Of a DNA stretch of 64,000 nt, positions 18,341 to 55,535 are shown in pieces (the stretch's first letter is position 1; each line of letters starts with the position of its first letter). The notes under the pieces are model-generated. The model was not told the DNA's origin and searched no databases. It saw only the letters and a list, made by a program, of their open reading frames with translations. A program made the translations under genes and the position numbers. Location: sequence record NC_019407.1; one strand, 5' to 3'.

Positions 18341-18356
18341 GTCGTGAATCTTGACA
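18341..18356 (+). promoter_or_regulatory. GANTC/-35 promoter motif upstream of portal
   Basis: GTCGTGAATCTTGACA; one of nine copies. Confidence 0.65.
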
Positions 18357-18464
18357 ACCGGGCGTTAACCATGCCATTTTCCCGCCTACCTGCCCCACCG
18401 GTAGGGCCTCCAACGTCAACTTGGGGAGGATGCGTGCGTCCTCCCCTCCTTCTCCGGGCGCCGC

Positions 18465-20366
18465 ATGGCCGGTCAGACGCCGAACTCCCTGAACATCTCG
18501 CGGGTCGCCCGCGCGACCTCGCAGGCCATCTATCTGGTCACCCATCCCGAGTACCAGCACTGGCGCTCGGAGTGGACCAAGCTGCGCGACGTCCTGGCGG
18601 GTCAGCGCGAGATCAAGCGCAAGGGCGAGGCCTATCTGCCGGCCATGAAGGGCGCCGACAAGGACGACTACAAAATCTACCTGGAGCGGGCGACCTTCTT
18701 CAACATGCTCGCCCAGACGCGCGATGGCATGACCGGCATGGTCTTCCGCCGCGACCCGTCGATCAAGAACCTGCCGCCCAAGTTCAAGGACGCCGTGCGG
18801 CGCTTCGCCAAGGACGGCTCCTCCCACGCCACCTTCGCCAAGGCGGTCCTGTCGGACCAGTCGGGCATTGGCCGCTACGGCGTCCTGGTCGACGTCACCG
18901 ATTCCCCGGTCCGCAACGCCCAGCCGTCGAGCTTCGCGGTCGGCTACGCGGCCGAAAACATCCTCGACTGGGACGAGGTGGTCGACACCGCCGGCTTCTA
19001 TGTCCCCAGCCGCGTCCTGCTGCGCGAATTCGTCCGCGACCTGCGCTGGAAGAGCGACATCGAGCCCCTGACCACCGCCAAGGCCCGCAAGGCGCGCGCC
19101 GAGGCCCTGGCCTCCGGCTCCTCGTCCAGCCCCCTGGTGCGCCAGACCGCCCGCACCCTGGGCGGCTACAGCTACATCACCGTCTATCGGGAACTGAAGC
19201 TCGAAGAGATCGAGTGGCCGTCCGGCGAGGTCAAGCCCGCCTACGTCCAGTACCTCTACGAAGAAGACCCCGAGTCGACGCCGATCGCCCGCCTCGTCCC
19301 CAATGTCCGGGGCGAGCCGCTCGACTTCATCCCCTTCAAGTTCTTCGGCGCCTCGGGCAACACCGCCGACGTCGAAAAGCCGCCGCTGCTCGACATCTGC
19401 GACCTCAACCTGTCGCACTACCGCACCTACGCCGAACTCGAATACGGCCGCCTGTTCACCGCCCTGCCGGTCTATTACGCGCCGGGCACCGACAGCGAGG
19501 GCACCGGCGAATACCACATCGGCCCGAACATGGTCTGGGAAGTCCCGCAGGGCTCCGAGCCGGGCATCCTGGAATATACCGGCCAGGGCCTGAAGGCCCT
19601 CGAAACCGCCCTCAACGACAAGGAGCGGCAAATCGCCGCGATCGGCGGCCGGATGATGCCCGGCGCCTCCAAGTCGGTGTCGGAGAGCAACAACCAGACG
19701 ACTCTTCGCGAGGCCAACGAGCAATCGCTGCTCCTCAACATCATCCAGGCCTGTGAGGCGGGGATGACCGACGTCGTCCGCTGGTGGCTGATGTGGCGCG
19801 ACGTCCCGCTGGCCGAGACCGAGAACCTGCGCTACGAGATCAACACCGACTTCCTGTCGACGCCGATCGGCGCGCGCGAGATGCGGGCGATCCAGCTTAT
19901 GGCCAACGACGGCCTGCTGCCCGATCCGGTCTTCTACGAGTACATGCGCAAGGCCGAGGTCATCTCCTCGGACATGACCTTCGAGGAGTTCCAGGAACTG
20001 CGCGCCGATCCGGATTCGTTCATCAACAACCCGGACGCCCAGGCCCGCCAGCGCGGCTTCACCAACCGCAGCCAGGAACTCGAACAGACCCGCATGGCGC
20101 GCGAGGCCGACTTCACCCAGCAGAAGATCGATATCCAGGAGCGCGCCGTCGCCGTCCAGGAAGGTCATGCCGAAGTCGCCCACGCCGTCGGTTCGACCTC
20201 GGTCTCGGCCTCGCGCAAGCTGGGCGATCCCGAGCAGGCCAAGCCGGCGCAGGCCGAGGCCGCCCAGATCGCCAACCAGCGCCGTCAGATCAACAATGCC
20301 GCCGCCCCGCCGGCGGCCCCTGGCGCGCCGCCCGCTCCCGCCCCGAACCCGAGGACCGCCCGATGA
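18465..20366 (+). CDS. Portal protein (633 aa)
   Basis: HPEY..W...RD...G...IKRKGEAYLP, YLERATFFN, PLLDICDLNLSHYR (DUF4055-type portal signatures); size. Confidence 0.8.
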   Translation: MAGQTPNSLNISRVARATSQAIYLVTHPEYQHWRSEWTKLRDVLAGQREIKRKGEAYLPAMKGADKDDYKIYLERATFFNMLAQTRDGMTGMVFRRDPSIKNLPPKFKDAVRRFAKDGSSHATFAKAVLSDQSGIGRYGVLVDVTDSPVRNAQPSSFAVGYAAENILDWDEVVDTAGFYVPSRVLLREFVRDLRWKSDIEPLTTAKARKARAEALASGSSSSPLVRQTARTLGGYSYITVYRELKLEEIEWPSGEVKPAYVQYLYEEDPESTPIARLVPNVRGEPLDFIPFKFFGASGNTADVEKPPLLDICDLNLSHYRTYAELEYGRLFTALPVYYAPGTDSEGTGEYHIGPNMVWEVPQGSEPGILEYTGQGLKALETALNDKERQIAAIGGRMMPGASKSVSESNNQTTLREANEQSLLLNIIQACEAGMTDVVRWWLMWRDVPLAETENLRYEINTDFLSTPIGAREMRAIQLMANDGLLPDPVFYEYMRKAEVISSDMTFEEFQELRADPDSFINNPDAQARQRGFTNRSQELEQTRMAREADFTQQKIDIQERAVAVQEGHAEVAHAVGSTSVSASRKLGDPEQAKPAQAEAAQIANQRRQINNAAAPPAAPGAPPAPAPNPRTAR

Positions 20367-20689
20367 GCTACCTCCTTTCGTCCTACAAGGCTCCCGCGTC
20401 CGAGGCGGTCGCCGCCCACGCCAAGTCCCTCCTGGCCGAGCAGGGCTACGCCGCTCGTGAGGACCTGATCGGGCGCTGCCAGGAAGCCAGCGTTGATCTG
20501 GCCCGCACCGCCGGGCTGAACGCGGCCGAAGCCGCCGAGGTCGGCGAGGAGATCGCCGGCTTGCAGCGTCTGATCGCCGAACTGGTCGCCACCCAAGCCA
20601 AGCTGGAGGCCGAGGGCCGCAGCGCCTACGAAGCCGCCGCCCTCAACGCCGCGACGGCCGTCTATCTGTCGCGCGGCCTGACGCCGTAA
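20363..20689 (+). CDS. Hypothetical helical protein (108 aa)
   Basis: SD GAGGA; ATGA overlap with the portal stop. Confidence 0.75.
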   Translation: MSYLLSSYKAPASEAVAAHAKSLLAEQGYAAREDLIGRCQEASVDLARTAGLNAAEAAEVGEEIAGLQRLIAELVATQAKLEAEGRSAYEAAALNAATAVYLSRGLTP

Positions 20690-20708
20690 CCCTAGCTTGT
20701 AGAGTAAC

Positions 20709-20888
20709 ATGCCCTCGCGCTACGATTCCCTTGAAGACCTGATGCACGACCTCGATCACGAGGGCATCGTGGACGATGGCTTTGGCGAACTGGACGAGGA
20801 GGACTTGTCCCTTCTCGCCCCGCCGGGCAAGAAGACCGCGCCCGCGCCGGCCGCCAAGAAGCGGGGCCGTCCCAAGAAGGCGACCTGA
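20709..20888 (+). CDS. 59-aa acidic protein with C-terminal KKRGRPKK (AT-hook-like)
   Basis: Read by eye; TGATG coupling to the next gene. Confidence 0.7.
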   Translation: MPSRYDSLEDLMHDLDHEGIVDDGFGELDEEDLSLLAPPGKKTAPAPAAKKRGRPKKAT

Positions 20889-21127
20889 TGCGCCACACCT
20901 CCGCCCGCTGGAACGTCCTGACCGTGCGGCTGGACGACACCGCCCACTGGGTCGACGAGGTCGACGTGACCATCACCGACCTGGAGACGGGCGAGCATCC
21001 GCGCGGCGAGGACGGCGAGTTCCTCCCCATCCTGGCGGCGACGCCCGAGACCATCACCCTCTACAACGGCCACGCCATCGCCGGCCGCTACGAGATCACC
21101 TCCAGCCTTGAGGCGCCTTGTGTCTGA
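20888..21127 (+). CDS. Hypothetical protein (79 aa)
   Basis: ORF track, coupled. Confidence 0.7.
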   Translation: MRHTSARWNVLTVRLDDTAHWVDEVDVTITDLETGEHPRGEDGEFLPILAATPETITLYNGHAIAGRYEITSSLEAPCV

Positions 21128-21293
21128 GACGACCCTGATCGGCGATCCGAACGCCGAGCGGACCATCGAGGTCCTGGCCATGCACCCCGACGAGGCCGCG
21201 AGCTTCGTCCCCACGCCCGAGCAGGCCGCCAAGATCGCGGCGGGCGACATGATCATCGGGATCATCCGCTACGGCCCCCCGCCGACGTCGTGA
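21120..21293 (+). CDS. Hypothetical protein (57 aa)
   Basis: GTG at 21120 with SD GAGG. Confidence 0.6.
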   Translation: MSETTLIGDPNAERTIEVLAMHPDEAASFVPTPEQAAKIAAGDMIIGIIRYGPPPTS

Positions 21294-21302
21294 ATCTTGA
21301 CA
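21287..21302 (+). promoter_or_regulatory. GANTC/-35 promoter motif
   Basis: GTCGTGAATCTTGACA. Confidence 0.65.
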
Positions 21303-21353
21303 CGCCATGTCAGGTGTGATGACGTAGCCCTCGTTAACCACGAGGGCTTTTCC

Positions 21354-21611
21354 ATGACCACCGCCGTCGACATCCAGGCCGCCGGGCACAACCTGATCGT
21401 CTACCTGACGGACACCTTCCTGATCGACGGCGAAGTCCAAGAACGCGATTCCATCGAGTTCGTCCGCAAGGGCGCCAAGCGCACCTTCCACGTCCATCAG
21501 ACCCGTGATCTCTACGTCACCGAGGTCCGGGACGCCGAAACCGATCTCAACGCGCTGATCGATGCTGGCGACGAGGCTGCGGCCCGCCAGTACATCCTCG
21601 ACGCGTCCTAG
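21354..21611 (+). CDS. Hypothetical protein (85 aa)
   Basis: ATG at 21354 after GAGGG. Confidence 0.7.
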   Translation: MTTAVDIQAAGHNLIVYLTDTFLIDGEVQERDSIEFVRKGAKRTFHVHQTRDLYVTEVRDAETDLNALIDAGDEAAARQYILDAS

Positions 21612-21798
21612 TTTGTAGCGGCGCCGATTGCCCAGCGGGCGCATGCCGGACACGCGCTGGGAACCAAATCGGCCGCGATGCGCGCGAGGGCTTTTTGATG
21701 CAGGCCTAGCGCGTCAACAGGTGGCGCCGGCCTCTGGCTTCCAGGGGTTCCTTTCAACCTGAATCGCGGCAAGTCCGGGCTCCTTTCCCGAGGGCTCC

Positions 21799-22383
21799 AT
21801 GAGCGACGATTTCGACAAGCGTTTCGACGAGAAGAAGGCGGCCCTCGACGGCGCCGCGCGGGGCCAGCTTTCGCTCCCCTTCCCTGGATCGTCCTCGGCC
21901 TCGGCCGAGGAGTTGATCCGCCGCTTTTCGTCGCTCAACCCCACCCCGCTGCCGCCGTTCGTGCTCGGCGCGGCCGTCAAGCTGTCGGACACGCCCATCC
22001 AGCCCGCGCCGCGCGAGGGTCATGCCGACGAGGTGTTCATCGACCTGCCGTTCGATCACAAGACGGTGTCCGACTGCAAGGCCAAGTTCGTCGACGACAA
22101 GAAGGCCTTCCAGGGCTTTCCAGGCGAGCCGGTCGAGGAAGCGGCGCCCAAGATCACGATCCAGGTCTATCTCAAGAACGGGCAGGTGCGCGAGTACGAC
22201 GTCGACACCCAGGCCGCCGCCCGCGAGCACGCCTTCGAGATCATCCAGACCGGCTATCGCGCCGTCGACGAGGCCGATCCCTGCACCCTGACCCACTGGC
22301 CGCCGCACGAGATCAAGAAGGTCAAGCTCAAGGCCGCCAAGCCGTGGACGACCCAGTATTTCGACCGCGTGCGGGGCACCTGA
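21799..22383 (+). CDS. Hypothetical protein (194 aa)
   Basis: ORF track; GC3 bias. Confidence 0.75.
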   Translation: MSDDFDKRFDEKKAALDGAARGQLSLPFPGSSSASAEELIRRFSSLNPTPLPPFVLGAAVKLSDTPIQPAPREGHADEVFIDLPFDHKTVSDCKAKFVDDKKAFQGFPGEPVEEAAPKITIQVYLKNGQVREYDVDTQAAAREHAFEIIQTGYRAVDEADPCTLTHWPPHEIKKVKLKAAKPWTTQYFDRVRGT

Positions 22384-22619
22384 TGACCCCGACCGAAGCC
22401 GTCATCGCCCGGATCGAGTCCGGCGAGCCCTTCACCTATCACACCCTGAGCGTGATCAACGACGCGGCGGGTGGGAACGAGGCGCGCGACCGGCTGGCCG
22501 ACCGCACGATCCAGAAGTACCGCCGCAAGGGCTGGATCACCTTCACTCGCGAGGGCCGCTACGTGGTCTGGCGTCCGACGCCGGCCGGCGCAGCGCAGTT
22601 TCACAAAGACAATGGGTAG
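22383..22619 (+). CDS. Hypothetical protein (78 aa)
   Basis: TGATG coupling. Confidence 0.7.
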   Translation: MTPTEAVIARIESGEPFTYHTLSVINDAAGGNEARDRLADRTIQKYRRKGWITFTREGRYVVWRPTPAGAAQFHKDNG

Positions 22620-23067
22620 GCCGGCTCTAAATCGTTGCACCAAATGCGAAGTGCCGTTGGTGACTGGAGAGACGCGCACGGCGGCTCAAGAAGTTCATCA
22701 GAGTCCTTATTGCACGTCTTGCGCGAACACCGCGCAGAAACAGTATAGAGATCGACAGCCTTTGGAATGGCACATGGTGCGTAACGCTATGCGCCGCGCG
22801 AGGGAACAGGGACTGGATTTTAACCTAGTCACGACTGACTTGAGCATCCCTGAAACTTGTCCAGTTTTGGGGATCACTTTGGTCAAAGGAGCGGGTTTTT
22901 CGCATGATGCCTCGCCTTCCCTAGATCGAATTATCCCGGAAAAGGGCTACGTCAAAGGAAATGTGATCATCATTTCCCACAAGGCTAACCGAATGAAGAA
23001 CAACGCAACGTTGCCCGAACTTAAGCTTCTCGTTTCGTGGTTGGAGGGCGTACAATGTGTACGGTGA
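22612..23067 (+). mobile_element. Free-standing HNH endonuclease gene (151 aa), homing-endonuclease-like
   Basis: CTKC/CTSC, CPVLG, SLDRIIPEKGYVKGNVIIISHKANRMKN; visibly lower GC than its neighbours. Confidence 0.8.
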
Positions 23068-23438
23068 GCGCGATTATGGATTATGGCCGCCATCAATGGC
23101 CCGACCTCCTGGGTCCGGGCAGTCCGAACATCGTTCCGGCCACGGATCAGCCGTGGTTCGAGATCGTCTCGCCCGGTCTGCCGCCGGCCCCGGTCCACCC
23201 TAAACCCAAGGTCCCGACCCGCGCCGAGATCGAGGCCTTCCGTCGGCTGGTCAAGGCCGCCCAGGAGTTCGACGAGCAGACAGGCCAGCCGCACTGCGAG
23301 GACCCCGAGAAGATCAAGCTGCTCGACGCGATCAACAAGCTGGCCGATCGCCTCGACGCCATCGAAAAGCGTCTCGCCGCCCAGGACAGCGCCGACGCCG
23401 AGGACGCGGCGGCGATCACCGCTTCGGTCAAGACGTGA
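23055..23438 (+). CDS. Hypothetical protein (127 aa)
   Basis: ATG at 23055, SD GGAGG. Confidence 0.75.
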   Translation: MCTVSAIMDYGRHQWPDLLGPGSPNIVPATDQPWFEIVSPGLPPAPVHPKPKVPTRAEIEAFRRLVKAAQEFDEQTGQPHCEDPEKIKLLDAINKLADRLDAIEKRLAAQDSADAEDAAAITASVKT

Positions 23439-23677
23439 GCGTCTTTGATCTCCCGGCCGACGGCTTTGATCGCCGCAAGCCGCTCTACCGGGTCTTCAAC
23501 ATCGACGGCGAGAAGCAGTGGTGGACGGTGATCGCCGCGCTCAACGCGCCGGGTCGCCGCTGCACCAAGCAGGAGGCCCAGGCCTGCGAGGACTATGTCG
23601 CGGCCCACGCCTGGGCCGAGCACTTCTGGAATTGCTACGCCGGTAGCGGCAAGGCCACCATCTACGAGAGCACGTGA
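23435..23677 (+). CDS. Hypothetical protein (80 aa)
   Basis: GTGA overlap. Confidence 0.7.
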   Translation: MSVFDLPADGFDRRKPLYRVFNIDGEKQWWTVIAALNAPGRRCTKQEAQACEDYVAAHAWAEHFWNCYAGSGKATIYEST

Positions 23678-24433: not shown

Positions 24434-24801
24434 CCCACCGTCCCTCGGCTTATCTCCGGACCCCGCCGATGCGCTATCCCGGCCCTTCCGGCTTCGATGA
24501 ACGGCTGCACCGGGCCGACGGCCGCCCGACGCGGCTTTTGGTCGCGCCGCATCTGGCCTGGGCGCTCCACCAGCTACGGCGCTATGGTTCGCCGATCGAC
24601 TGGCTCCTGCCGGTGACGCGCGAGGGCCTCGCCGCGCCGGGCGATCGTCCGTTCGGCCAGAAGACGGTGCGTCTCAAGCTCGGGCGCCGGAGGCTGACCC
24701 GCCTGGGCGGCTATCTCGAATACATGCAGTTCGCGAGCGATGCGGACCTTGCAACCTACAGGCAATGGCTGAAGGAGACGCCGATTTTTCCGGTGTCATG
24801 A
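24430..24801 (+). CDS. Hypothetical protein (123 aa)
   Basis: GTGA overlap. Confidence 0.6.
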   Translation: MTHRPSAYLRTPPMRYPGPSGFDERLHRADGRPTRLLVAPHLAWALHQLRRYGSPIDWLLPVTREGLAAPGDRPFGQKTVRLKLGRRRLTRLGGYLEYMQFASDADLATYRQWLKETPIFPVS

Positions 24802-24810
24802 TTCTTGACA
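24795..24810 (+). promoter_or_regulatory. GANTC/-35 promoter motif
   Basis: GTCATGATTCTTGACA. Confidence 0.65.
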
Positions 24811-29776: not shown

Positions 29777-29815
29777 GTCATGAATCTTGACATTCGGCGT
29801 ATTTTTTGCTAGGTT
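29777..29815 (+). promoter_or_regulatory. GANTC/-35 promoter upstream of the head genes
   Basis: GTCATGAATC-TTGACA-N17-TAGGTT. Confidence 0.75.
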
Positions 29816-29920: not shown

Positions 29921-30712
29921 ATGCCTGTTCTGTCCTACGATACGCTCGACATGGTCCCCGAGGGCCTGCGCGAGTTCGCAAAGCAAGTCGACGGCAGCGA
30001 GAAGTTCCAAGTGAACGTCGTCAGCGCCGCGAAGATCGACGAGTTTCGCGACAACAACATCAAGATTTCGAAGGAGCGCGACGCGCTCCTGGAGAAGGTG
30101 GCCCGGCTGGAGCCGATCGTCGGCGAGGACCCGGACGCCTTCAGCGCCAAGCTGACGGAACTGCAAGCGATCGCCCAGCGCGTCGCCGACGGTGACCTGA
30201 AGGAAGGCCGCGCCCTCGAAGAAGCGCTCCAGAAGCGCACCGAGGAGATGCGGAAGCAGTACGACGACCGTCTTCAGCAGACGGGCAAGGAACGGGCCGC
30301 GTGGCAGGCCAAGCACGATGAACTGGAGCGCCGGTTCAAGCAGTCGCTGGTCAGCAACGCGATCACCGCCGCCGCGATGGCGCAGGGCTCGGGCATCGAC
30401 CCGACCGCGATCACCGAGGTGGTTCGCTCGGGCCTGGACGTGTTCAAGGCCGACGATCAGGGCCGTCTGACCCCCTATGTGGGCGACGCTCCGCTCTACG
30501 GCGCCGACGGTGTCACGCCGATGACGCCGAAGGAATGGCTGCAAAAGCTGAAGGAGGAGAAGCCGTTCTTCTTCCTCAACAGCAGCGGCGGCGGGGCCGG
30601 CGGCGACAAGACCAAGACGGTTCACGGCGTCACGCCGGAGCGTCTGAAGGGCATGTCGGCGGCCGAGCGTCTGGCCATCGCCAATGGCGAGAAGTCGGCG
30701 CGGCTGCGCTAA
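29921..30712 (+). CDS. Capsid scaffolding / head assembly protein (263 aa)
   Basis: Coiled-coil, charged, immediately before the MCP; C-terminal PFFF..S.GGG and MSAAERL motifs. Confidence 0.7.
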   Translation: MPVLSYDTLDMVPEGLREFAKQVDGSEKFQVNVVSAAKIDEFRDNNIKISKERDALLEKVARLEPIVGEDPDAFSAKLTELQAIAQRVADGDLKEGRALEEALQKRTEEMRKQYDDRLQQTGKERAAWQAKHDELERRFKQSLVSNAITAAAMAQGSGIDPTAITEVVRSGLDVFKADDQGRLTPYVGDAPLYGADGVTPMTPKEWLQKLKEEKPFFFLNSSGGGAGGDKTKTVHGVTPERLKGMSAAERLAIANGEKSARLR

Positions 30713-30876
30713 GTCACGAAACCCTGGTTTCGTGATCTGATCTAGGCCCTTCGGGGCGGAGTTGCCGGGCTCTCCTGCAAAAGCCCGGACCGATTTCGCC
30801 CGCACGGGCCAGAGCTTGAGCGCCGATCCTGGCGATCGCTCGAACAAGTCAAGTCATGAAACCCTGGTTTCGTGAC
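30713..30876. repeat. Two copies of the palindrome GTCAYGAAACC-CT-GGTTTCGTGA(C)
   Basis: 30713-30736 and 30853-30876. Confidence 0.9.
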
Positions 30877-30975
30877 AAGAGAATTCCCTCGGTGACGGCC
30901 GGTCGACCGAGGGGCAGACCGAGACGGGGTCCGTCTCTCAACCAGACCGGTGCGAACACCAAGAGGAGCAAGCCA

Positions 30976-31911
30976 ATGGCTGCTGTGACCCTGCTGCAAG
31001 CGTCCGAAATGGCGCTCGGCAACGACGAAGTCAAGCGCGCCGCGATCATCGAACTTTTCGCGACGCCCGACATCCTGCGCGTGATCCCGTTCCTGGACAT
31101 CCAGGGCGGCGCGTACACCTACCTGCAAGAAGGCCAGCTCTCGGGCGTCGCCTTCCGGGGTATCAACGAGTCCTACGACACGTCGACCGGCGTGATCAAC
31201 CCGCAAGTCGAGCGCCTGCGCATCGTCGGCGGTGACCTGGACGTCGACAAGTCCCTGCTGAAGACCCACGGCGCCAACGTGCGTTCGCAGCAGGAGCGCA
31301 TGAAGGTCAAGGCCCTGAGCCTGTACCTCGCCGGCAAGATCATCAACGGCGACTCGGAAGCCGACCCCCGCGAGTTCGACGGTCTGCGCAAGCGCATCAC
31401 CGGTTCGCAACTGTTCCCGGCCGGCGCGACCGCTGGCGGTGACGCCCTGTCGCTGGCCGTCCTGGACGAAGCCATCGACGCGGTCGACGGCGCCACGCAC
31501 CTGATCATGTCGAAGCGCATGCGCAACCTGCTCGCGCAGTCGGCCAACAACCCCAACGTCACCGGCTACGTGTCGTGGGAAAAGGACGAGTTCGGCATGC
31601 GCGTGATGCGCTACGCTGACCTGCCGATCCTGGTCACCGACTACGACGACAAGAACCAGCAGGTCATCGACTTCAACGAAGCCTGCCCTGGCGGCGGCTC
31701 GGCGGTCGGCACCTCGATCTACGTCGTCAACATCGGCGACGAAGGCGTGGTCGGCCTCCAGAACGGCGTCATGGAGATCGAAGACCTCGGTGAGATCGAC
31801 GCCAAGCCGGTTCTGCGCACCCGCGTCGAATGGCTGGTCTCGCTGGCCGTCCTGAGCGGTCGCTCCGCCGCTCGCGTCTGGGGCATCAAGAAGGCCGCCG
31901 TCACCCGCTAA
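30976..31911 (+). CDS. Major capsid protein (311 aa, HK97-like fold presumed)
   Basis: SD GAGGAG; strongly optimised codons; AFRGINESY, GGDLDVDK, FDGLRKRI; position after the scaffold gene. Confidence 0.85.
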   Translation: MAAVTLLQASEMALGNDEVKRAAIIELFATPDILRVIPFLDIQGGAYTYLQEGQLSGVAFRGINESYDTSTGVINPQVERLRIVGGDLDVDKSLLKTHGANVRSQQERMKVKALSLYLAGKIINGDSEADPREFDGLRKRITGSQLFPAGATAGGDALSLAVLDEAIDAVDGATHLIMSKRMRNLLAQSANNPNVTGYVSWEKDEFGMRVMRYADLPILVTDYDDKNQQVIDFNEACPGGGSAVGTSIYVVNIGDEGVVGLQNGVMEIEDLGEIDAKPVLRTRVEWLVSLAVLSGRSAARVWGIKKAAVTR

Positions 31912-32522: not shown

Positions 32523-32538
32523 GTCGTGAATCTTGACA
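32523..32538 (+). promoter_or_regulatory. GANTC/-35 promoter motif
   Basis: GTCGTGAATCTTGACA. Confidence 0.65.
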
Positions 32539-32626
32539 CAAGGGCCGTTTCATGCCAGAAGTCAAGTCTCTTTTGAGCGCGGCGTTGAAGGGCCGTGCCG
32601 GTCTCCCCCGAAACGGAAAATCCCCC

Positions 32627-45926: not shown

Positions 45927-46703
45927 ATGGCGATCCAGAACCCCCATTCCACCACGCCCGGCACCATGCCGCACCTGACGCCCGGCGAGGTCGGCGTCAA
46001 CAAGGCCGACGACATTCTCTGGTTCCGCTCCCAGGGTCGGCGGGTGCCGATCACCCTGAGCGACCTTACCCGCGCCCCACCTGCGGACGGCTATGTGGGC
46101 GCGCCCCTGGCCCTGGAGGGTGGCGCTCCGGTCTGGAACGTCAAGCTCTTGCCGTCCTCGATCGTCGCCGGCGCGGTCAAGGTCGATCTCCCGCCCGCCG
46201 CCGGCCTGCACGCCGTGCCGAGCGTCCTGCTCCAGGGCCTGGGGGCCGATCGCGCCCTGGCGACTAATGATCTGGACCTCACCCCCTTCTACGTGCGTTC
46301 CGATTCCATCACCCTGACCCATTTGGCGTTCAGCGTCCGCTCGGCTGGCGCGCCGGCCATGCGCGTAGGTATCGTCGACAGTTTCGGCGTCGTCCAGGCC
46401 GATGTCCTGGTCGCCGCGCCGGTCGTGGGCGCCAATGTCGTGGCGCTCTCGCCAGTCCTGACCCTCCAGCGCGGGGTTTATCGCACCATCCTGGCGACGA
46501 CGGGCGCGGTGACGGTGGGGATCGCCACGGGCGCGCGCATGGAGCAGGGCTGGGACATCATCGCCGACGCCCCGTCGTTCATCCACGGCTACAGCGGCAG
46601 CAAGAACACCGCCGGCGGCATCGGGAGCCTGCCGGCCTTGACCCCGCGCCGCGCCGCCGTTCCGGGGCAGGATCACGCCGTCCTCCTGCGCTGGACGGCG
46701 TGA
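45927..46703 (+). CDS. Fibre-associated protein (258 aa)
   Basis: ATG at 45927; PHLTPGEVGVNKADDILWF motif; C-domain resembles the preceding two ORFs. Confidence 0.7.
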   Translation: MAIQNPHSTTPGTMPHLTPGEVGVNKADDILWFRSQGRRVPITLSDLTRAPPADGYVGAPLALEGGAPVWNVKLLPSSIVAGAVKVDLPPAAGLHAVPSVLLQGLGADRALATNDLDLTPFYVRSDSITLTHLAFSVRSAGAPAMRVGIVDSFGVVQADVLVAAPVVGANVVALSPVLTLQRGVYRTILATTGAVTVGIATGARMEQGWDIIADAPSFIHGYSGSKNTAGGIGSLPALTPRRAAVPGQDHAVLLRWTA

Positions 46704-46735
46704 ATCTTGACACTCGGTCCAAATGCGGTTAACCT
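46697..46735 (+). promoter_or_regulatory. GANTC/-35 promoter
   Basis: GGCGTGAATC-TTGACA-N17-TAACCT. Confidence 0.7.
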
Positions 46736-49221: not shown

Positions 49222-49309
49222 TGCGAAGTGGCGGAATTTGGTAGACGCACCGGCATGAGAGGCCGGCGCCCTTCGGGGCGTGAGGGTTCGAGTCCCTTCT
49301 TCGCGACCA
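49222..49309 (+). tRNA. tRNA-Leu(GAG)
   Basis: Loop AT-GAG-AG. Confidence 0.85.
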
Positions 49310-49322
49310 AAGACGAGATCAT

Positions 49323-49394
49323 GCCGGCCGGCGCAGGCGCGCGGGGGAGGTTGTGTCCCTCCTTGGCTCAGTTCGATACTGAGGGTCGGTTCCA
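49323..49394 (+). tRNA. tRNA-His(GTG), minimal D-loop, no G-1
   Basis: Loop TT-GTG-TC; 7/5 stems; D-arm GCGC-AGGC-GCGC. Confidence 0.7.
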
Positions 49395-49399
49395 GTTAC

Positions 49400-49470
49400 G
49401 GGGTATGCGCAGGGCGCAGGCATCCTTTGCAAGGAAGTCGGGGTGGGTTCGAGTCCCACATACTCCACCA
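49400..49470 (+). tRNA. tRNA-Ala(TGC), minimal D-arm
   Basis: G3.U70 identity pair, A73, loop TT-TGC-AA. Confidence 0.8.
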
Positions 49471-49474
49471 ATAC

Positions 49475-49562
49475 GGTAGGTTGGCTGAGAGGCCTAAGGC
49501 GCCCGTTTCGAAAACGGGAGAACCGCAAGGTTCCGTGGGTTCGAATCCCACACCTACCTCCA
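49475..49562 (+). tRNA. tRNA-Ser(CGA)
   Basis: Long V-arm, loop TT-CGA-AA; U73. Confidence 0.9.
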
Positions 49563-49566
49563 ACAT

Positions 49567-49654
49567 GGATGTATGGCTGAGAGGCCGAAGGCGCCCGCTT
49601 GGAAAGCGGGTGAACCGCAAGGTTCCGTAGGTTCGAATCCTACTGCATCCGCCA
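49567..49654 (+). tRNA. tRNA-Ser(GGA)
   Basis: Long V-arm, G73. Confidence 0.9.
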
Positions 49655-49658
49655 ACAT

Positions 49659-49745
49659 GGTAGGTGGTTCCGGCCTGGGGCCGGACCCGGTTGCTAACCG
49701 GCCGGAGCCGCAAGGCTTGGGGTTCGATTCCTCCTCCTACCGCCA
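49659..49745 (+). tRNA. tRNA-Ser(GCT) with 8/4 fold and 6-7 bp D-stem
   Basis: 8-bp acceptor (one U.U), 4-bp T-stem, TCCGGC/GCCGGA D-stem, G73. Confidence 0.8.
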
Positions 49746-49753
49746 CTTCGATG

Positions 49754-50008
49754 TTGACACCCGCGACGCGGCCTGTCATACGTCACGACAGAGCGAACAC
49801 CCCCCGGCCGGGTTTGTTGTCATACCGGGTCGTCACGCCCCGTCGGGGCTCTAGTAGCTCTTCGTGTGGAGTTTTCCGCCTCCCTCCCAGACAAGGAGGC
49901 GGACCCAACCAACATCGCGATCTCCCGTGATCGTCGGCGACGGGCGCCGTCAGAGACCTTTGCCTGCGCGGCTCCGCTGCGGCCCTGGTCTCGTCCCGAC
50001 CAAATTTT
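49754..50008 (+). ncRNA. Promoter plus candidate structured non-coding transcript(s) ending in CCA-AATTTTTT
   Basis: TTGACA-N17-CATACG; multiple stems; no convincing ORF. Confidence 0.45.
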
Positions 50009-50021
50009 TTCGTCGTGGTGC

Positions 50022-50050
50022 TTGACACTGCGAAACTGTTCTGCTAGGGT
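50022..50050 (+). promoter_or_regulatory. Promoter of the 12-tRNA sub-operon
   Basis: TTGACA-N17-TAGGGT. Confidence 0.85.
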
Positions 50051-50057
50051 TCACGTC

Positions 50058-50156: not shown

Positions 50157-50186
50157 GTCCCACACCACGCTCAACCAGCTTTCGAG

Positions 50187-50223: not shown

Positions 50224-50258
50224 CCCCCTTTCGATCACGGAGATCGCCAAACAGACAC

Positions 50259-50343: not shown

Positions 50344-50348
50344 ACCAC

Positions 50349-50424
50349 GGACTCGTAGCTCAGCAGGTAGAGCGCCGGCTTGAAACCCCGGAGGTCGGAG
50401 GTTCGACTCCTCCCGTTTCCACCA
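50349..50424 (+). tRNA. tRNA-Phe(GAA)
   Basis: Loop TT-GAA-AC; two acceptor mismatches. Confidence 0.85.
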
Positions 50425-50429
50425 ACAAC

Positions 50430-50505
50430 GCCCGATGAGCCAGATGGGAAGGCGCCGCCGTGACATGGCGGGATTGAGAAGGTTCGATTCCTTCATCAGG
50501 CACCA
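50430..50505 (+). tRNA. tRNA-Val(GAC)
   Basis: Loop GT-GAC-AT. Confidence 0.85.
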
Positions 50506-50507
50506 AT

Positions 50508-50583
50508 GCAAGTGTAGCTCAGTTGGTAGAGCAGCGGACCGATAATCCGCCCGTCCCTGGTTCGAGTCCAGGCATTTGCACCA
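50508..50583 (+). tRNA. tRNA-Ile(GAT), C33
   Basis: Loop CC-GAT-AA. Confidence 0.85.
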
Positions 50584-50590
50584 ATTCTGA

Positions 50591-50665
50591 TGTGGCATAG
50601 CTCAGGGGTAGAGCGCGCGCTTGATAAGCGTGAGGTCGGGGGTTCGAAGCCCTCTGCCACTACCA
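50591..50665 (+). tRNA. tRNA-Ile(GAT), second copy
   Basis: Loop TT-GAT-AA; U1.U72 mismatch. Confidence 0.85.
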
Positions 50666-50698
50666 GTTTCCAGGCCGGCGGAGATGCGCCGGACCTGA

Positions 50699-50774
50699 TG
50701 GCGTTTAGCATAGTGGGAGTGCAGGGGTGTCACATACCTCGATCGAACTGGTTCGATTCCAGTAACGCCAACCA
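50699..50774 (+). tRNA. tRNA-Val(CAC)
   Basis: Loop GT-CAC-AT. Confidence 0.85.
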
Positions 50775-50779
50775 AATGT

Positions 50780-50853
50780 TGAGGGTTCGTCTAATGGTAG
50801 GACGGCTGGGTCTGGTCCAGCTAATCTAGGTTCGAGTCCTAGCCCCTCATCCA
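50780..50853 (+). tRNA. tRNA-Gln(CTG)
   Basis: U1-A72, loop GT-CTG-GT. Confidence 0.85.
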
Positions 50854-50860
50854 AGCTTGT

Positions 50861-50934
50861 TCTCGGGTGGTCTAATGGTAAGACATCTGGTTTTGGTCCA
50901 GAGGATTGGGGTTCGATTCCTTGGCCGAGAACCA
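50861..50934 (+). tRNA. tRNA-Gln(TTG)
   Basis: U1-A72, loop TT-TTG-GT. Confidence 0.85.
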
Positions 50935-50949
50935 ACTATTTGAATTTAT

Positions 50950-51024
50950 TCCAGTCAATGCACAAGGTGTGCAGCGGCACTGTTAATGCCTGTGAGCCCG
51001 GTTCGATTCCGGGGTCTGGAGCCA
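50950..51024 (+). tRNA. tRNA-Asn(GTT)
   Basis: U1-A72, G73, loop CT-GTT-AA. Confidence 0.85.
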
Positions 51025-51050
51025 ACATGCCGGCCTCGGCCGGCACATGC

Positions 51051-51133
51051 GCCCTGGTAACCGAGGGGGATTACGAATCCCTTAGTCGTAGCAGGAGTTG
51101 AAAAGGGTGGTTCGAATCCACTCCAGGGTGCCA
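51051..51133 (+). tRNA. tRNA-Arg(ACG)-like lacking a D-arm, with 22-nt extra region
   Basis: 7-bp acceptor, only TAACCGA before the anticodon stem, loop TT-ACG-AA, normal T-arm, CCA. Confidence 0.65.
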
Positions 51134-51140
51134 AATTCAT

Positions 51141-51223
51141 AGCGCGCAGGCCGAGCAGGATCATCGTCAGGCGTCGCCCTCCGAAGGCGAAGAGGCCCGG
51201 TTCGAGTCCGGGGCGCGCTGCCA
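51141..51223 (+). tRNA. tRNA-Arg(CCG) with enlarged D-loop
   Basis: Loop CT-CCG-AA; 17-nt D-loop. Confidence 0.8.
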
Positions 51224-51226
51224 TCC

Positions 51227-51304
51227 GCGCGGGTAGCTCAATGGACCCAGAGCAGCCGTCTTCTACACGGTGGGTTGGGGGTTCGAGTCCCTCCCCGCGC
51301 GCCA
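51227..51304 (+). tRNA. tRNA-Arg(TCT)
   Basis: Loop CT-TCT-AC. Confidence 0.9.
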
Positions 51305-51307
51305 AAC

Positions 51308-51650
51308 TTGACGGGCGATGTCGAATCGCCGAGGATCAAACCGTAGGCCTCTTCCCGTGGGCCTGACATATACGTCCGCCAGCACTGCCATTCCGCGTCA
51401 GCGGGCGCGGCGCGAGGAGGGTTAACCCCTCGTTGTCGTGCAGCCGGGTGGTGTGGACGTCCCAACGTGATCTTCGAACGCGGCATGCCGTGGAGGGGTG
51501 ATCGGATGGCGAACCAAGGGACACCTCCTTATCCTAGCCTGGGCCGCATGGGGCTCCGCTGGGAGAAACGGCCTGACCCGACCGGAGGTGCGTCCAGGAT
51601 GCCGGCTCTCCATGCCAGAGTCTCGTGGACTAGGGTCTGAAATTTTTTCT
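51308..51650 (+). ncRNA. Promoter plus candidate ~310-nt structured RNA
   Basis: TTGACG-N17-GAGGAT; many nested stems; ORFs have atypical codon usage; ends at TTTTTT. Confidence 0.4.
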
Positions 51651-51662
51651 GGCGCTGATGTG

Positions 51663-51794
51663 TTGACACTCCTCGGAGGCTCGGCTAAAACCAGCAGCGT
51701 CAGAGCGGCGTTGGACCACGAGGTCCGCCGCGAGCTTCTGCGTTGTCGTCAGGAACGGCCCGTCAGCAATCCCGCTGGCGGGTCGTTTCGTTTT
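51663..51794 (+). ncRNA. Promoter plus candidate ~100-nt sRNA with its own terminator
   Basis: TTGACA-N17-TAAAAC; rod hairpin; 13-bp terminator with AATCCC loop followed by TTCGTTTT; no ORF. Confidence 0.55.
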
Positions 51795-51830
51795 GGGCGC
51801 AATGCGACGTTCAGTCCAACCATGGGTAGT

Positions 51831-51869
51831 GTCATGAATCTTGACTTTCGGCGCTTATTCCGGTAGCTT
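51831..51869 (+). promoter_or_regulatory. GANTC/-35 promoter
   Basis: GTCATGAATC-TTGACT-N17-TAGCTT. Confidence 0.7.
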
Positions 51870-51914
51870 GCCCGACATCAGCAAACGCTCACAAGTCGGG
51901 GACCGAGAGCCGTC

Positions 51915-52331
51915 ATGTCGCAAGACCACCACGGCTCGTCCTCGGGCCAAGAACGCATCTACCAGAAACTGGATGAGCTTGGCTCCATGCACGCGCGCAC
52001 CCGTGAAGATATTGCCCGCATCCAGGAGATGATGCGAGCGGTCGGTTCGTCGCAGGAGCGAATCGAAAAGCGCCAGGACCATTTCGAACGCGAAATCTGG
52101 CGCGAGATGGAAGATCGCGCCGCGCGCACGAGCGCCCAACTCGACGAAATCAAGAGCCACACCAACCTGCGGATCGAGGAGATCGAGGCCAAGGTCGACA
52201 CGATCCGCGAAGAGCGGATCGCCGAAAAGGCCCAGTGGCGCGGCCCCGAGAAGGCCATCGCCGCCCTGGTCGCCGTCGCCGGGGCCATCGCCGCCTTCGC
52301 CACGATCCTCACTTTCCTGAAGGGACACTAG
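51915..52331 (+). CDS. Coiled-coil protein with C-terminal TM helix (138 aa)
   Basis: Heptad-rich body; AIAALVAVAGAIAAFATILTFL. Confidence 0.75.
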   Translation: MSQDHHGSSSGQERIYQKLDELGSMHARTREDIARIQEMMRAVGSSQERIEKRQDHFEREIWREMEDRAARTSAQLDEIKSHTNLRIEEIEAKVDTIREERIAEKAQWRGPEKAIAALVAVAGAIAAFATILTFLKGH

Positions 52332-52438
52332 GACTTACAGTCAAGCTTGCGCGCCTGCGGCCAGAAGTCGCGCTTCTTGACACCCGATCTGGGCCGGCAT
52401 AACCATAGGACCATCGTTCCTGGGTGGAGTTTTCCCTA

Positions 52439-52645
52439 ATGGCTGTCGCGCTTACTGTCGTCTCGGTTGAGACCGAATCTACCATCCAAGGTGTTGACCC
52501 CGACGCGGCGCATGTCCGCCTGATCGAGGTTCTGCATACCGCCGCAGAAGCGGGTCTTGGGGAAATGACGTTGGAAGTCAAAGCGGAGATCGCGGCGCTG
52601 CTCCAGCAGGCGTCCGTGGAACTCTCCCACTGCCGGCCGGTGTAG
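52439..52645 (+). CDS. Hypothetical protein (68 aa)
   Basis: Own TTGACA-N17-TAACCA promoter near 52377; SD GGAG. Confidence 0.6.
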   Translation: MAVALTVVSVETESTIQGVDPDAAHVRLIEVLHTAAEAGLGEMTLEVKAEIAALLQQASVELSHCRPV

Positions 52646-52679
52646 GGGTCCCGTAAATCGCCATCCCAGAGGGAGCGAC

Positions 52680-53546
52680 GTGTCCGAGTCTGCTGAGTTC
52701 AACCCGCTCGACCAAAATCAGTTCCCTCCTCGCCTCACCAAGGCTGCTGCGCGACAGGCGCGGCGCCAGGAGCGCAGCCAGAAAAAGGACCCCACGGCCA
52801 ACAAGCCGAACTACAAGGCGCTCGAAGCCAAGACCGAACGCCAACGGCGCTATATCCAGGCCCTCAAGGCTGGCGAAAGCGTCATCGCCATTGGGGGAGC
52901 CGGCACGGGGAAGACCTACATCCCGTCCCGGCTCTTCGCCAAGAAGCTGATCGAGGCGAAGATCGAACGCCTGATCATCGCCCGCGTCACCGCCTCGCGT
53001 CCCAAGCACGCCCTGGGCTTCCTGCCCGGCAAGCTGGAAGCCAAGCTCGCCCCGTGGCTCGTCCCGGTGATCGAGGGCGTCAAGGCCGAGATGAACGCCC
53101 AGACCTACACGCAGTTGCAGGAGGCCGGCAAGATCGAGTTCGCCTCGTTCGAGCACATGCGGGGCCGGACCTTCGCCGAGTGCTGCGTCCTCCTCGACGA
53201 GGCGCAGAACGCCGACTACAAGGACCTAAAGATGGTCCTGACCCGTTGGGGCGAGAACGCCCAATACGCGGTCACCGGCGACGTCGACCAGATCGACGTC
53301 GACGATTCTGGCCTGGAGACGGTCGTCGACATCGTCGAGACCCACGACATCCCGATCCACGTGATCGAGTTCACCGACGAGGACGTGGTCCGCTCGCCCA
53401 TGGCCAAGGCCTGGGTCAAGGCGTTCTCCGCCCACGAGGGTAAGGACGGGCGGACGCGGCGCTTCCATCGTCCCACTGTCAGGAATCTTGACGTCCTGCC
53501 GGCTTTTATCGATAATGGCCGAGTCACGAAACCCGTGGCGTCGTGA
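52680..53546 (+). CDS. phoH: PhoH-like ATPase
   Basis: GGAGTGKTY, LGFLPGKL, FEHMRGRTF, LLDEAQN, VTGDVDQID, DVVRS. Confidence 0.95.
   Translation: MSESAEFNPLDQNQFPPRLTKAAARQARRQERSQKKDPTANKPNYKALEAKTERQRRYIQALKAGESVIAIGGAGTGKTYIPSRLFAKKLIEAKIERLIIARVTASRPKHALGFLPGKLEAKLAPWLVPVIEGVKAEMNAQTYTQLQEAGKIEFASFEHMRGRTFAECCVLLDEAQNADYKDLKMVLTRWGENAQYAVTGDVDQIDVDDSGLETVVDIVETHDIPIHVIEFTDEDVVRSPMAKAWVKAFSAHEGKDGRTRRFHRPTVRNLDVLPAFIDNGRVTKPVAS
53478..53516 (+). promoter_or_regulatory. GANTC/-35 promoter inside the phoH 3' end, driving the neck genes
   Basis: GTCAGGAATC-TTGACG-N17-GATAAT. Confidence 0.65.
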
Positions 53547-53563
53547 CAAAGACGTAGCGCACC

Positions 53564-54085
53564 ATGGCCTTCACCTTCGTTGTTGAGACTGGCGCCGGGG
53601 ACCCGGCCGCGAACTCGTACTGCGACGTGCAGTTCGCGGACGACTATATCTACGCCAACGTCTATGCCAACACCGCCTGGGACGCGTTGGACCAGGATGA
53701 GAAGGAACGCTTCCTCGTCCGGGCGTCGAAATATCTCGACCGCACGATCGCCTGGGCCGGGGAGAAGGTCGACGAGGATTCCGGCCTGCGCTGGCCGCGC
53801 GCCGGGGTCTATGACATCGACGGCTTCCTGATCCCCAGCGACGCGATCCCCCAGCAACTCATGGAGGCCACCGCCGAGATGGCGGCGGCCCTTATGAACA
53901 ACGACTGGACCTCGCCGCAGACCACGCGCGGCATGAAGGAAATCCAGGTCGACGTCATCGAACTGAAGTTCGACAGCGAAATCCAGCGCGGCTCCATGCC
54001 CGACATCGTCATGTCGATCCTCGAAGGTCTGGGGGTCGTCAAGACCGGCACTCGTCCGGCCTTCAAGAAGATCATTCGCCACTAA
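53564..54085 (+). CDS. Head-tail adaptor (173 aa)
   Basis: ANSYC....ADDY...W...A..YLD...W.G...GLRWPR...IP..L.EAT.E pattern; position. Confidence 0.8.
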   Translation: MAFTFVVETGAGDPAANSYCDVQFADDYIYANVYANTAWDALDQDEKERFLVRASKYLDRTIAWAGEKVDEDSGLRWPRAGVYDIDGFLIPSDAIPQQLMEATAEMAAALMNNDWTSPQTTRGMKEIQVDVIELKFDSEIQRGSMPDIVMSILEGLGVVKTGTRPAFKKIIRH

Positions 54086-54477
54086 TGGCCCTCGAAGCCT
54101 TCATCCGTTCCCAGGTCGTCATCGCCTTCAACCAGCTTGACGACATCGCCAAGCGCTGGACCTACGTCCAACGCTCGGGCGATCCGGTGCGCGATGTCGA
54201 GAGCGGCGTGACCACCTATCCCTCGACCGAGATCGTCATTCCCAAGGCGGTCAAGGTGCGGTTCAAGAAGGACGAGAAGGACGCCCACGGCCAAACCCTG
54301 GTGGGCGAGAAGGTCCTGTTCCCCCGCGTCTATCTGCCGGGCGACTTCGAGACCGCGACCTCCGACTACCTCGTCGACCAGAACGACATCATCTGGGAGA
54401 TCATCAGCGACCTGGGCGACCCGGCCTCGGCGCTGGCGATGTTCCAGGTCCGCAGCACGCGGAAGAAGGCCCCGTGA
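54085..54477 (+). CDS. Head closure protein (130 aa)
   Basis: Gene order after the adaptor; beta-rich. Confidence 0.65.
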   Translation: MALEAFIRSQVVIAFNQLDDIAKRWTYVQRSGDPVRDVESGVTTYPSTEIVIPKAVKVRFKKDEKDAHGQTLVGEKVLFPRVYLPGDFETATSDYLVDQNDIIWEIISDLGDPASALAMFQVRSTRKKAP

Positions 54478-54947
54478 AGTCGGGCGGAGCCAAGCTCAGC
54501 TTCTACACCGACGGGAACCTGGAGGCGGCGTTCAAGCGCTTCTTCGCCACCGCCGAGAAGCGCTATGACGAGCGGGCCGATCGCCTGCTGATCAAGCTGA
54601 ACGAACTGATCCTCGCCCGCACCCCGGTGTGGGAAGGCGACACCATCCACAACTGGCGCTGGTCGACGCGCGCCCCGGACATGCGCCACGAGGCCCCGCT
54701 CGACAACGGCGATCCGGGCCGCACGAGCGAGATGGACCTGGGCCAGGAGCCGCGCCGCCGCGTCAACGAGACGCGCCCCCGACAGTCGCTGGCCGGCGCC
54801 CTGCGCGCCAAGGAGCCGATCGACATCTATCTGACCAACACCGCCGAGAGCGCGGTCGATCTCGAATACGGCCTGCTCCCGACCAGGGCGCAGAGCCGAA
54901 ACAAGATGGGGATGGTCCGAATCTCGATTAAAGAGGTGTTCGGATGA
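54474..54947 (+). CDS. Neck / tail-completion protein (HK97 gp10-like, 157 aa)
   Basis: RTPVWEG...NW, YLTN.AE....LEYG. Confidence 0.7.
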   Translation: MKSGGAKLSFYTDGNLEAAFKRFFATAEKRYDERADRLLIKLNELILARTPVWEGDTIHNWRWSTRAPDMRHEAPLDNGDPGRTSEMDLGQEPRRRVNETRPRQSLAGALRAKEPIDIYLTNTAESAVDLEYGLLPTRAQSRNKMGMVRISIKEVFG

Positions 54948-55018
54948 TCCCCGCCTTCATCATCCTGCCGCGCGTCTATCTCGCCGCGTGGCTGTCGTTT
55001 TGGCTGGGAGAGGACTGA
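54944..55018 (+). CDS. 24-aa hydrophobic peptide MIPAFIILPRVYLAAWLSFWLGED
   Basis: ATGA overlap upstream, TGATG overlap downstream. Confidence 0.55.
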   Translation: MIPAFIILPRVYLAAWLSFWLGED

Positions 55019-55473
55019 TGCTCGAACACGACATGCTCCGGCAAGTCCTGGAGCAGCAGGCCGTCGCCGCCGCCCCGACGATCGGGCTGAAGCTGAACTT
55101 CGACAACTCCGAATTCGTCCAGCCCAAGGACGGAGCCCACTGGGCTGAGTTCTGGGTCCAGACCGGCAACACCGTGCCCTGCGAGGTCGCCGGCCCGCGC
55201 GGCTACGAAAAGACCTCGGGTCTGATCCAGTTCACGCTCAAGGCTCCCGAGGAAGAGGGCAACGGCGCGATCCTCAAGAAGGCCGGCGCGCTCAAGAAGG
55301 TCTTCAACCGTCGCCAATGGGTCGTGCCGCCGGACGGCTATGTGACCCTCGACCCGATCTCGATTCAGTCGCACGGCAAGCCGATCGACGGCTTCTATAA
55401 TGTCGTGGTCTGGGCGACCCTCTGGTTCCACCACCGCGATCCCGACGCCGACGATCGCTGGATTCGCGGTTGA
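55018..55473 (+). CDS. Tail terminator protein (151 aa)
   Basis: ATG at 55018, SD GAGAGGA; FDN..F.QP...W....Q.G...G..Q..L..P...G pattern. Confidence 0.7.
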   Translation: MLEHDMLRQVLEQQAVAAAPTIGLKLNFDNSEFVQPKDGAHWAEFWVQTGNTVPCEVAGPRGYEKTSGLIQFTLKAPEEEGNGAILKKAGALKKVFNRRQWVVPPDGYVTLDPISIQSHGKPIDGFYNVVVWATLWFHHRDPDADDRWIRG

Positions 55474-55496
55474 CGAGGTCTTTCACGCCGGCTAAG

Positions 55497-55535
55497 GTCG
55501 TGAATCTTGACATTTCCCAAAGTCTAGGGTAGGGT
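55497..55535 (+). promoter_or_regulatory. GANTC/-35 promoter of the tail operon
   Basis: GTCGTGAATC-TTGACA-N17-TAGGGT. Confidence 0.75.

Follow-up and report, generated by a model that had tools for sequence, protein, structure and literature searches.

A predicted promoter class for the delayed genes of Caulobacter phage CcrMagneto, in which the abutting GANTC site is probably incidental

The window analysed here, a stretch of 64,000 nucleotides, corresponds to bases 1-64000 of the annotated record of Caulobacter phage CcrMagneto (NC_019407/JX100812; 218,929 bp; 100% identity, same coordinates), a phiCbK relative of the genus Shapirovirus that served as our reference genome and is called Magneto below. 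A first-pass annotation of this DNA had described nine promoters in which a GANTC site, the methylation target of the host CcrM enzyme, lies directly against the -35 box, and had proposed that structural-gene expression depends on the methylation state or on a GcrA-like activator. We found that this GAATC-TTGACA motif is real and more extensive than first noted, and the sequence features of the sites indicate that they are sigma-70-type promoters, which make up a distinct class for the delayed genes (replication, virion, lysis and packaging). The explanation we prefer, to which we give an even chance, is that the motif forms the upstream portion of a class promoter read together with a phage-encoded dimeric regulator, GANTC being incidental.

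The nine sites were recovered as described. The window holds nine copies of GANTCTTGAC, all on the plus strand (starts at 18346, 21292, 24800, 29782, 32528, 46702, 51836, 53483 and 55502), as compared with 0.37 on average and at most 2 in dinucleotide shuffles; the positions first given are five bases lower because they were counted from the upstream GTCRT. The GANTC pentamer is GAATC at eight sites and GATTC at one, and the five bases before it are GTCGT (four sites), GTCAT (three), GTCAG (one) or GGCGT (one). The members of the class in the window and elsewhere in the genome are as follows.

18328..18356, plus strand: promoter of gp040 (portal); distal CACGAC at 18328-18333, 7-bp gap, GTCGT at 18341-18345, GAATC at 18346-18350, TTGACA at 18351-18356
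18365-18372: TTAACCAT in the spacer of the gp040 promoter, similar to a CtrA half-site (TTAACC/GGTTAA)
21287..21302, plus strand: promoter of gp045, GTCGT-GAATC-TTGACA; GAATC overlaps the gp044 stop codon; leader of about 24 nt
24795..24810, plus strand: promoter of gp054, GTCAT-GATTC-TTGACA; the sole GATTC site in the window and a paralogue of the promoter at 21287
29777..29815, plus strand: promoter of gp065 (head scaffold), GTCAT-GAATC-TTGACA, 17-bp spacer, -10 box TAGGTT at 29810-29815
32523..32561, plus strand: promoter of gp068, GTCGT-GAATC-TTGACA; CAGAAG at 17 bp and GTCAAG further downstream
46697..46735, plus strand: promoter of gp077 and the first tRNA block, GGCGT-GAATC-TTGACA, -10 box TAACCT at 46730-46735
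50012..50050, plus strand: class member without GANTC, before the tRNA-Phe block, GTCGT-GGTGC-TTGACA, -10 box TAGGGT at 50045-50050
51831..51869, plus strand: promoter of gp081, GTCAT-GAATC-TTGACT, -10 box TAGCTT at 51864-51869
52367..52382, plus strand: probable class member without GANTC, before gp082, GTCGC-GCTTC-TTGACA
53478..53516, plus strand: promoter of gp084 (head-tail adaptor), within the 3' end of phoH, GTCAG-GAATC-TTGACG, -10 box GATAAT at 53511-53516
55484..55535, plus strand: promoter of gp089 (tail tube); distal CACGCC at 55484-55489, 7-bp gap, GTCGT-GAATC-TTGACA, -10 box TAGGGT at 55530-55535
64395, 70532 and 77092: tail-gene and endolysin promoters outside the window
85668 (nrdA), 92738, 99990 and 106014, minus strand: replication-module promoters
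112040 and 114460: further class sites
203737: terminase-block promoter

The promoters of the tRNA array had been said to lack the upstream element; this holds in part, as the one at 50012-50027 has no GANTC and yet keeps the half-site. In the whole Magneto genome there are 19 copies of GANTCTTGAC, each co-oriented with the next gene and located 57-183 nt before its start codon; the early arms (1-17 kb and 120-200 kb) contain none. The name of structural-gene promoters suits the portal, scaffold, head-tail and tail-tube genes and is too narrow for the class, which also serves replication, lysis and packaging genes. The motif recurs in the phages phiCbK (20 sites), Rogue (20), Bajun (16), Colossus (8) and CcrPW (10), each of which scored 0 with the reversed-pattern control. 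Five Caulobacter genomes yielded 5-12 copies per 4.0-4.8 Mb as compared with 3-7 for the reversed control, i.e. no enrichment in the host, and the density of the motif in the phage is about fifty-fold higher.

The following lines of evidence bear out the proposal that these sites are genuine promoters of their own class. First, their placement is that described above, and they look like sigma-70 (Caulobacter sigma-73) promoters, with a TTGACA-like -35 box, a TAnnnT-like -10 box and a co-oriented gene downstream. Second, a TAnnnT-like hexamer occurs 17 bp past the -35 box at 29810, 46730, 51864, 53511 and 55530, the -10 box being weaker at the remaining four of the nine sites, so that the earlier description of most sites as followed by N17-nAnnnT is a fair one. 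Third, the alignment of 16 orthologous promoter pairs of Magneto and Rogue revealed a footprint: identity, about 0.5 farther upstream, reaches 0.81-1.0 in the five bases before GANTC (GTCRT) and 1.0 at the base that closes the -35 box, drops to 0.5-0.8 within the spacer and recovers to 0.94-1.0 in the -10 region. The contigs of four phiCbK infection RNA-seq runs pass unbroken through 51570-57400, and transcript starts are not derivable from such contigs. PMC10688885 assigns the replication genes to the early phase and those for structure and lysis to the middle or late phase. Our literature search found no published account of phiCbK promoter classes.

The promoters of the early arms of Magneto belong to another class, about 25 copies of which serve both arms. 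They read cTGGC-N5-(A/G)TGTG-TTGACA-N17-TAGAAG, then ..cctcGACG (one example lies in the window, at 51653-51668), and their counterparts are GAGAG-TTGACA in Colossus and AAAAG-AGGTG-TTGACA in Kikimora. As both classes have the same -35 box, it is the approximately 10 bp upstream of it that separates early from delayed promoters. The first-pass annotation had CtrA controlling the early genes, and we observed the opposite: 10 of 22 delayed-class promoters have a CtrA-like half-site (TTAACC/GGTTAA) within 70 nt past the -35 box, versus none of 25 early-class promoters, the genome of Magneto containing 42 TTAACC in total. Those in the window are found at 18365-18372 and past the -35 boxes at 21297, 24805 and 46707. 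This restriction to the delayed class suggests that the host CtrA may gate the delayed-class promoters rather than the early genes, and the delayed-class TTAACC sites fit the idea of 'lytic deferment' (PMC9437464). As a separate observation, the genome of Kikimora (ON529857) carries about 35 early promoters in a row on the minus strand at 273-304 kb, and many of them have GTTAACC about 20 nt before the A-tract and -35 box, which places CtrA-like sites at early promoters in that phage.

Turning to the GANTC site, the comparison of orthologous promoters indicates that it is dispensable in related phages. Of about 23 class promoters in Magneto 19 contain it, as do 20 of 22 in Rogue and 8 of 22 in Colossus, the 14 further GCCAG-N5-TTGACA sites of Colossus bearing the pentamers AATTC, TATTC, TAATC, AAATC or GATTA. 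About ten class sites of Bajun carry CGATC or CAATC, and the orthologous promoters of Kikimora carry AATTC, AATCC or AAAAC. At the head-scaffold promoter, for example, Magneto has GAATC and the Colossus ortholog reads GCCAG-AATTC-TTGACA, with no GANTC. The tail-tube promoter has retained GANTC in all five lineages compared (Magneto, Rogue, Bajun, Colossus and Kikimora).

The half-site that precedes the pentamer differs between lineages: Magneto and Rogue both have tGTCgT, Bajun has aCGTCGy and Colossus has TGCCAG. As Magneto and Colossus infect the same host, a host protein cannot account for this difference. Furthermore, an inverted partner occurs exactly 7 bp upstream, in the form CACGAC-N7-GTCGTG in Magneto (at 18341, 55497, 99995 and 203732), (G/C)rCGAC-N7-GTCGy at most Bajun sites and CTGGC-N7-GCCAG at four Colossus sites. 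Such half-sites, inverted and always 7 bp apart, point to a dimeric DNA-binding protein, the specificity of which would have shifted alongside its sites. The inverted repeat noticed earlier (GTCRTGA/TCTTGAC) does match at 5-6 of 7 positions, but Colossus, with GCCAG, has not retained it, and the actual dyad partner lies upstream. We thus rejected the internal palindrome TGTCAT-GAATC-TTGACA as a functional dyad, because Colossus has TGCCAG as the left arm.

The origin of GANTC can be proposed from the four Magneto class members that lack it. Their pentamers (GGTGC, GATCC, GACGC and GCTTC) all begin with G and end with C, which assigns the G to the half-site GTCRTG and the C to CTTGACA, and the pentamer centre is AAT in 18 of 23 Magneto class sites. 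Hence, GANTC is probably formed by the juxtaposition of the half-site G, an A/T-rich centre and the C of CTTGACA.

In the mechanism we favour, the host RNA polymerase with its main sigma factor would read the near-consensus TTGACA and the variable -10 box, 17 bp apart. An A/T-rich pentamer (rAWTC) conserved in the subfamily abuts the -35 box, and the lineage-specific half-site of 5-6 bp just upstream often forms, with its inverted copy, a dyad of 17-19 bp centred near -49. A phage dimeric DNA-binding protein would occupy this dyad and most likely activate these promoters, the -10 boxes of which are weak; that there is such a factor, which protein it is and in which direction it regulates are what we infer. 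The best candidates would be gp146, a putative MarR-like winged-helix protein, and its neighbour gp147, a putative helix-turn-helix (HTH) protein.

These candidates are among the proteins with a DNA-binding fold that are conserved in Magneto, Rogue, Bajun and Colossus, namely gp106 (CI-like), gp124 (T5 A1-like), gp146, gp147 and gp223 (TgrL). A conserved cluster comprising gp144, gp146 and gp147 stands behind a class promoter in all four lineages, and the AlphaFold (AF2) model of gp146 (predicted local distance difference test score, pLDDT, of 83.5) matches in fold the winged-helix dimers of the MarR, PadR and ArsR types. For both gp146 and gp147, Magneto, Rogue and Bajun have a common recognition helix, and Colossus has a different one (VRP versus VAA in gp146; SKSQITRYLNG versus SKSQMSRYLKG in gp147), and that of gp124 follows the same lineage pattern. 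Two other proposals were rejected. TgrL, an early XRE repressor, is not suited as the reader, the published chromatin immunoprecipitation (ChIP) matrix being centred on CAACC and not on GTCGTG. The label 'middle transcription regulatory protein motA' borne by Brevundimonas phage homologs of gp146 was not confirmed, as neither gp146 nor its Kikimora homolog matched MotA in Pfam or the PDB.

Several points weigh against a phage regulator reading the dyad. The co-variation of the recognition helices follows the phage phylogeny and extends to gp124, and is therefore a lead rather than a proof and singles out no protein. Both gp146 and gp147 stand behind a promoter of their own class, which leaves the source of the initial protein unexplained. 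A good distal half-site is found at only about 6 of 22 Magneto sites, many copies being degenerate, and Kikimora has no clear half-site. The dyad centre near -49 is a non-classical position for an activator. Finally, the occurrence of GANTC at 19 of about 23 sites in the Magneto lineage means that there may be room for a lineage-specific use of methylation.

One alternative involves no dedicated factor: the 16-mer would be an extended consensus for the host RNA polymerase with the pentamer acting in an UP-like manner, and the likeness of the sites would stem from cassette duplication and descent. It is consistent with the consensus -35 box and the 17-bp spacing, with the A/T-rich pentamer being the only upstream feature retained in every lineage, Kikimora included, and with the lineage-specific upstream sequences of the early promoters, which must be active before any phage protein is synthesised. 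We nevertheless consider it distinctly unlikely, because the motif is not enriched in the host genomes, the orthologous promoters of Magneto and Colossus differ in half-site in spite of their common host, and the half-site equals the -35 box in conservation, in contrast to the drift of neighbouring bases. In addition, the inverted partner at a fixed 7 bp in three lineages, each with its own half-site, would not be predicted by descent alone.

Alternatively, the upstream element could be the operator of a repressor, an early phage protein acting alone or with the host CtrA to keep these strong TTGACA promoters off until later. With a consensus -35 box activation may indeed be unneeded; the CI-like gp106 is conserved in all lineages and has an early-class-like promoter, and the bias of TTAACC towards the delayed class, where it overlaps the core of the 10 promoters concerned, as well as 'lytic deferment' (PMC9437464), would agree with such a control. 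This possibility appears very doubtful to us, as a dyad at about -57 to -41 leaves the -35 and -10 boxes uncovered, the CAACC motif from the TgrL ChIP is unlike GTCGTG, and the recognition helix of gp106 differs between Magneto and Bajun in spite of their common half-site. The element of gp106 itself reads CTGGC-N4-ATGTG-TTGCCA (30380-30560, minus strand, of the second 50-kb piece, L002), and this CI-like HTH protein may be made early though its gene stands at the end of a delayed operon.

The alternative closest to the first-pass annotation is that the host CcrM methylates GANTC at the edge of the -35 box and that a GcrA-type cofactor, either the host GcrA or the phage gp229, activates the delayed promoters, or else that the methylation state operates as a replication-coupled switch, as at ctrA P1. 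The gcrA homolog it called for does exist: gp229, already noted as such by Gill et al. 2012, belongs to the GcrA family (PF07750, E-value 5e-25; aligned to 7ye1_G over residues 8-169) and possesses both GcrA domains, the DNA-binding one at the N-terminus and, at the C-terminus, the sigma-interacting one with its CCCH zinc finger; it has the Cys/His pattern as well as the contact residues W, F and Y. GANTC is also scarce in these genomes and yet kept at the class promoters of Magneto and Rogue, its frequency being 0.44 of the zero-order expectation in Magneto (0.56-0.79 under a third-order model), 0.43 in Rogue and 0.74 in Colossus, which has no GcrA gene. Further points in its favour are the tail-tube promoter, which has GANTC in all five lineages; the ability of GAATC to work as a GcrA box, e.g. 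in the csM promoter; the persistence of the host ccrM mRNA during phiCbK infection; and gp125, a protein that bears PFAGNG and NPPY, two motifs characteristic of N6-adenine methylases. This protein of 215 aa is encoded immediately behind a class promoter (49265-49912, minus strand, of the second 50-kb piece) and is conserved in Rogue (87%), Bajun (50%) and Colossus (47%); it matched nothing in Pfam, NCBIfam or the PDB, so that the two motifs are the only sign of such an activity.

We regard this methylation-based control as unlikely for the following reasons. First, the sequence context is wrong. The host GcrA prefers YGAKTCK, and TGAATCT (reverse complement AGATTCA) ranks 32nd of 32 contexts; in the PmipZ probe, substituting AGATTCA and a second low-ranked site, GGAGTCT, lowered GcrA binding to the unmethylated level. 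In Magneto, 17 of 19 sites are TGAATCT, the lowest-ranked context, and the middle base is A at 18 of 19, which is tighter than GANTC demands. Second, the position is wrong. Known GcrA boxes are at -20, -30 or +5 to +30, the linker being thought too short for boxes farther upstream, whereas the phage GANTC is centred at about -38, and neither phage promoter class has a GANTC at -20, -30 or +5 to +30. Third, GcrA genes and the motif are uncoupled: Colossus and CcrPW carry the motif without any GcrA gene, and the Brevundimonas jumbo phages Domovoi, Kikimora, Gurke and Bambus have GcrA-family genes and only 2-5 sites per 310-350 kb, i.e. the chance level. Fourth, the base-contact and methyl-pocket residues are not conserved in the gp229 protein of Magneto (R33K, N34S, I37C and H41D, with G38 and R42 kept), and those of the Bajun GcrA domains are changed differently, in spite of the identical GAATC-TTGAC core of the two phages. 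Fifth, the genomes of Magneto, Rogue, Bajun, Colossus and CcrPW yielded no match to a CcrM-type methylase (PF01555). Given this context, this position, the dispensable GANTC, the uncoupled GcrA genes and the absence of a phage CcrM, the proposed mechanism is unsupported; GANTC is probably incidental in the class promoters, where the host CcrM may still methylate it.

A variant of this proposal makes gp229, the recognition helix of which is TKSAVCGKADRL as compared with TRNAVIGKVHRL in the host protein, an orthogonal sigma-70 cofactor that would read TGAATCT at -38, a context that the host GcrA ignores. We find it very unlikely; if true, it would define a phage-private and possibly methylation-sensing promoter class in cells that lack the host GcrA. 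In Bajun (ON529858), the product of the GcrA-like gene at 30556-31188 on the minus strand has a tandem pair of GcrA DNA-binding domains and, after them, a single sigma-interacting domain.

A comparison with known systems helps to place the class promoters. They share with the GcrA/CcrM promoters of Caulobacter crescentus (Haakonsen 2015, PMC4647560; Wu 2018 and 2023, PMC5887438 and PMC9976885) a GANTC in a sigma-70-type promoter and, on the phage side, a two-domain GcrA-family protein, and they differ from them in the context (TGAATCT, not YGAKTCK), the centre (about -38, not -20, -30 or +5 to +30), the dispensability of GANTC in relatives, the gp229 residues and the uncoupling of gene and motif. 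They resemble the T4 MotA/AsiA middle promoters in that delayed genes, read by the host polymerase, are set apart by a class element beside the -35 region. However, the phage keeps TTGACA where T4 has the MotA box at -30 in its place, gp146 looks like a MarR-like winged helix without a MotA family match, and we identified no AsiA-like partner.

The lambda PRM promoter with CI at OR2 and the Mu Pm promoter with Mor possess activator dyads centred at about -42 or -43.5. The likeness is a dyad of about 17 bp, predicted here to bind a dimeric phage protein, just upstream of the -35 box; the differences are the centre at about -49, the perfect -35 box, the distal half degenerate in many copies, and a regulator represented by candidates only. 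The ctrA P1 promoter is said to have been found by Reisenauer and Shapiro in 2002 to be sensitive to the methylation state of its GANTC. It resembles the phage promoters in having GANTC near the -35 box, an arrangement that could couple firing to the passage of the replication fork, but the phage GANTC is not conserved among orthologous promoters, and the likeness is one of sequence.

Three further observations were made along the way. The inverted -35 core GTCAAG occurs 23 nt past the TTGACA hexamer at the gp068 promoter (32562-32567) and at the endolysin promoter (genome 77126-77131), so that the CTTGAC and GTCAAG cores are separated by about 26 nt, and the orthologous promoters in Colossus (42957) and Bajun (118649) have retained it. 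At 79223-79580 of the genome, the variant class promoter GTCAT-GATCC-TTGACA faces about 330 nt free of annotated genes; this stretch, which closes with a strong terminator common to gp106, may be a non-coding RNA, and an Rfam scan of the unannotated 79.2-79.6 kb region gave zero matches. Lastly, AATT and GTAC are wholly absent from the whole genome of Bajun (207 kb), which looks like the avoidance of restriction sites.

The Caulobacter cell-cycle field uses phiCbK as its standard phage. The two promoter classes, together with the candidates gp146, gp147, gp124, gp106 and gp229, make the temporal programme of the phage directly testable. The CtrA-like half-sites, limited to the delayed class, would provide concrete target promoters for 'lytic deferment'. 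More generally, a CcrM site that probably arises from two abutting elements is a caution for claims of epigenetic control that are based on motifs.

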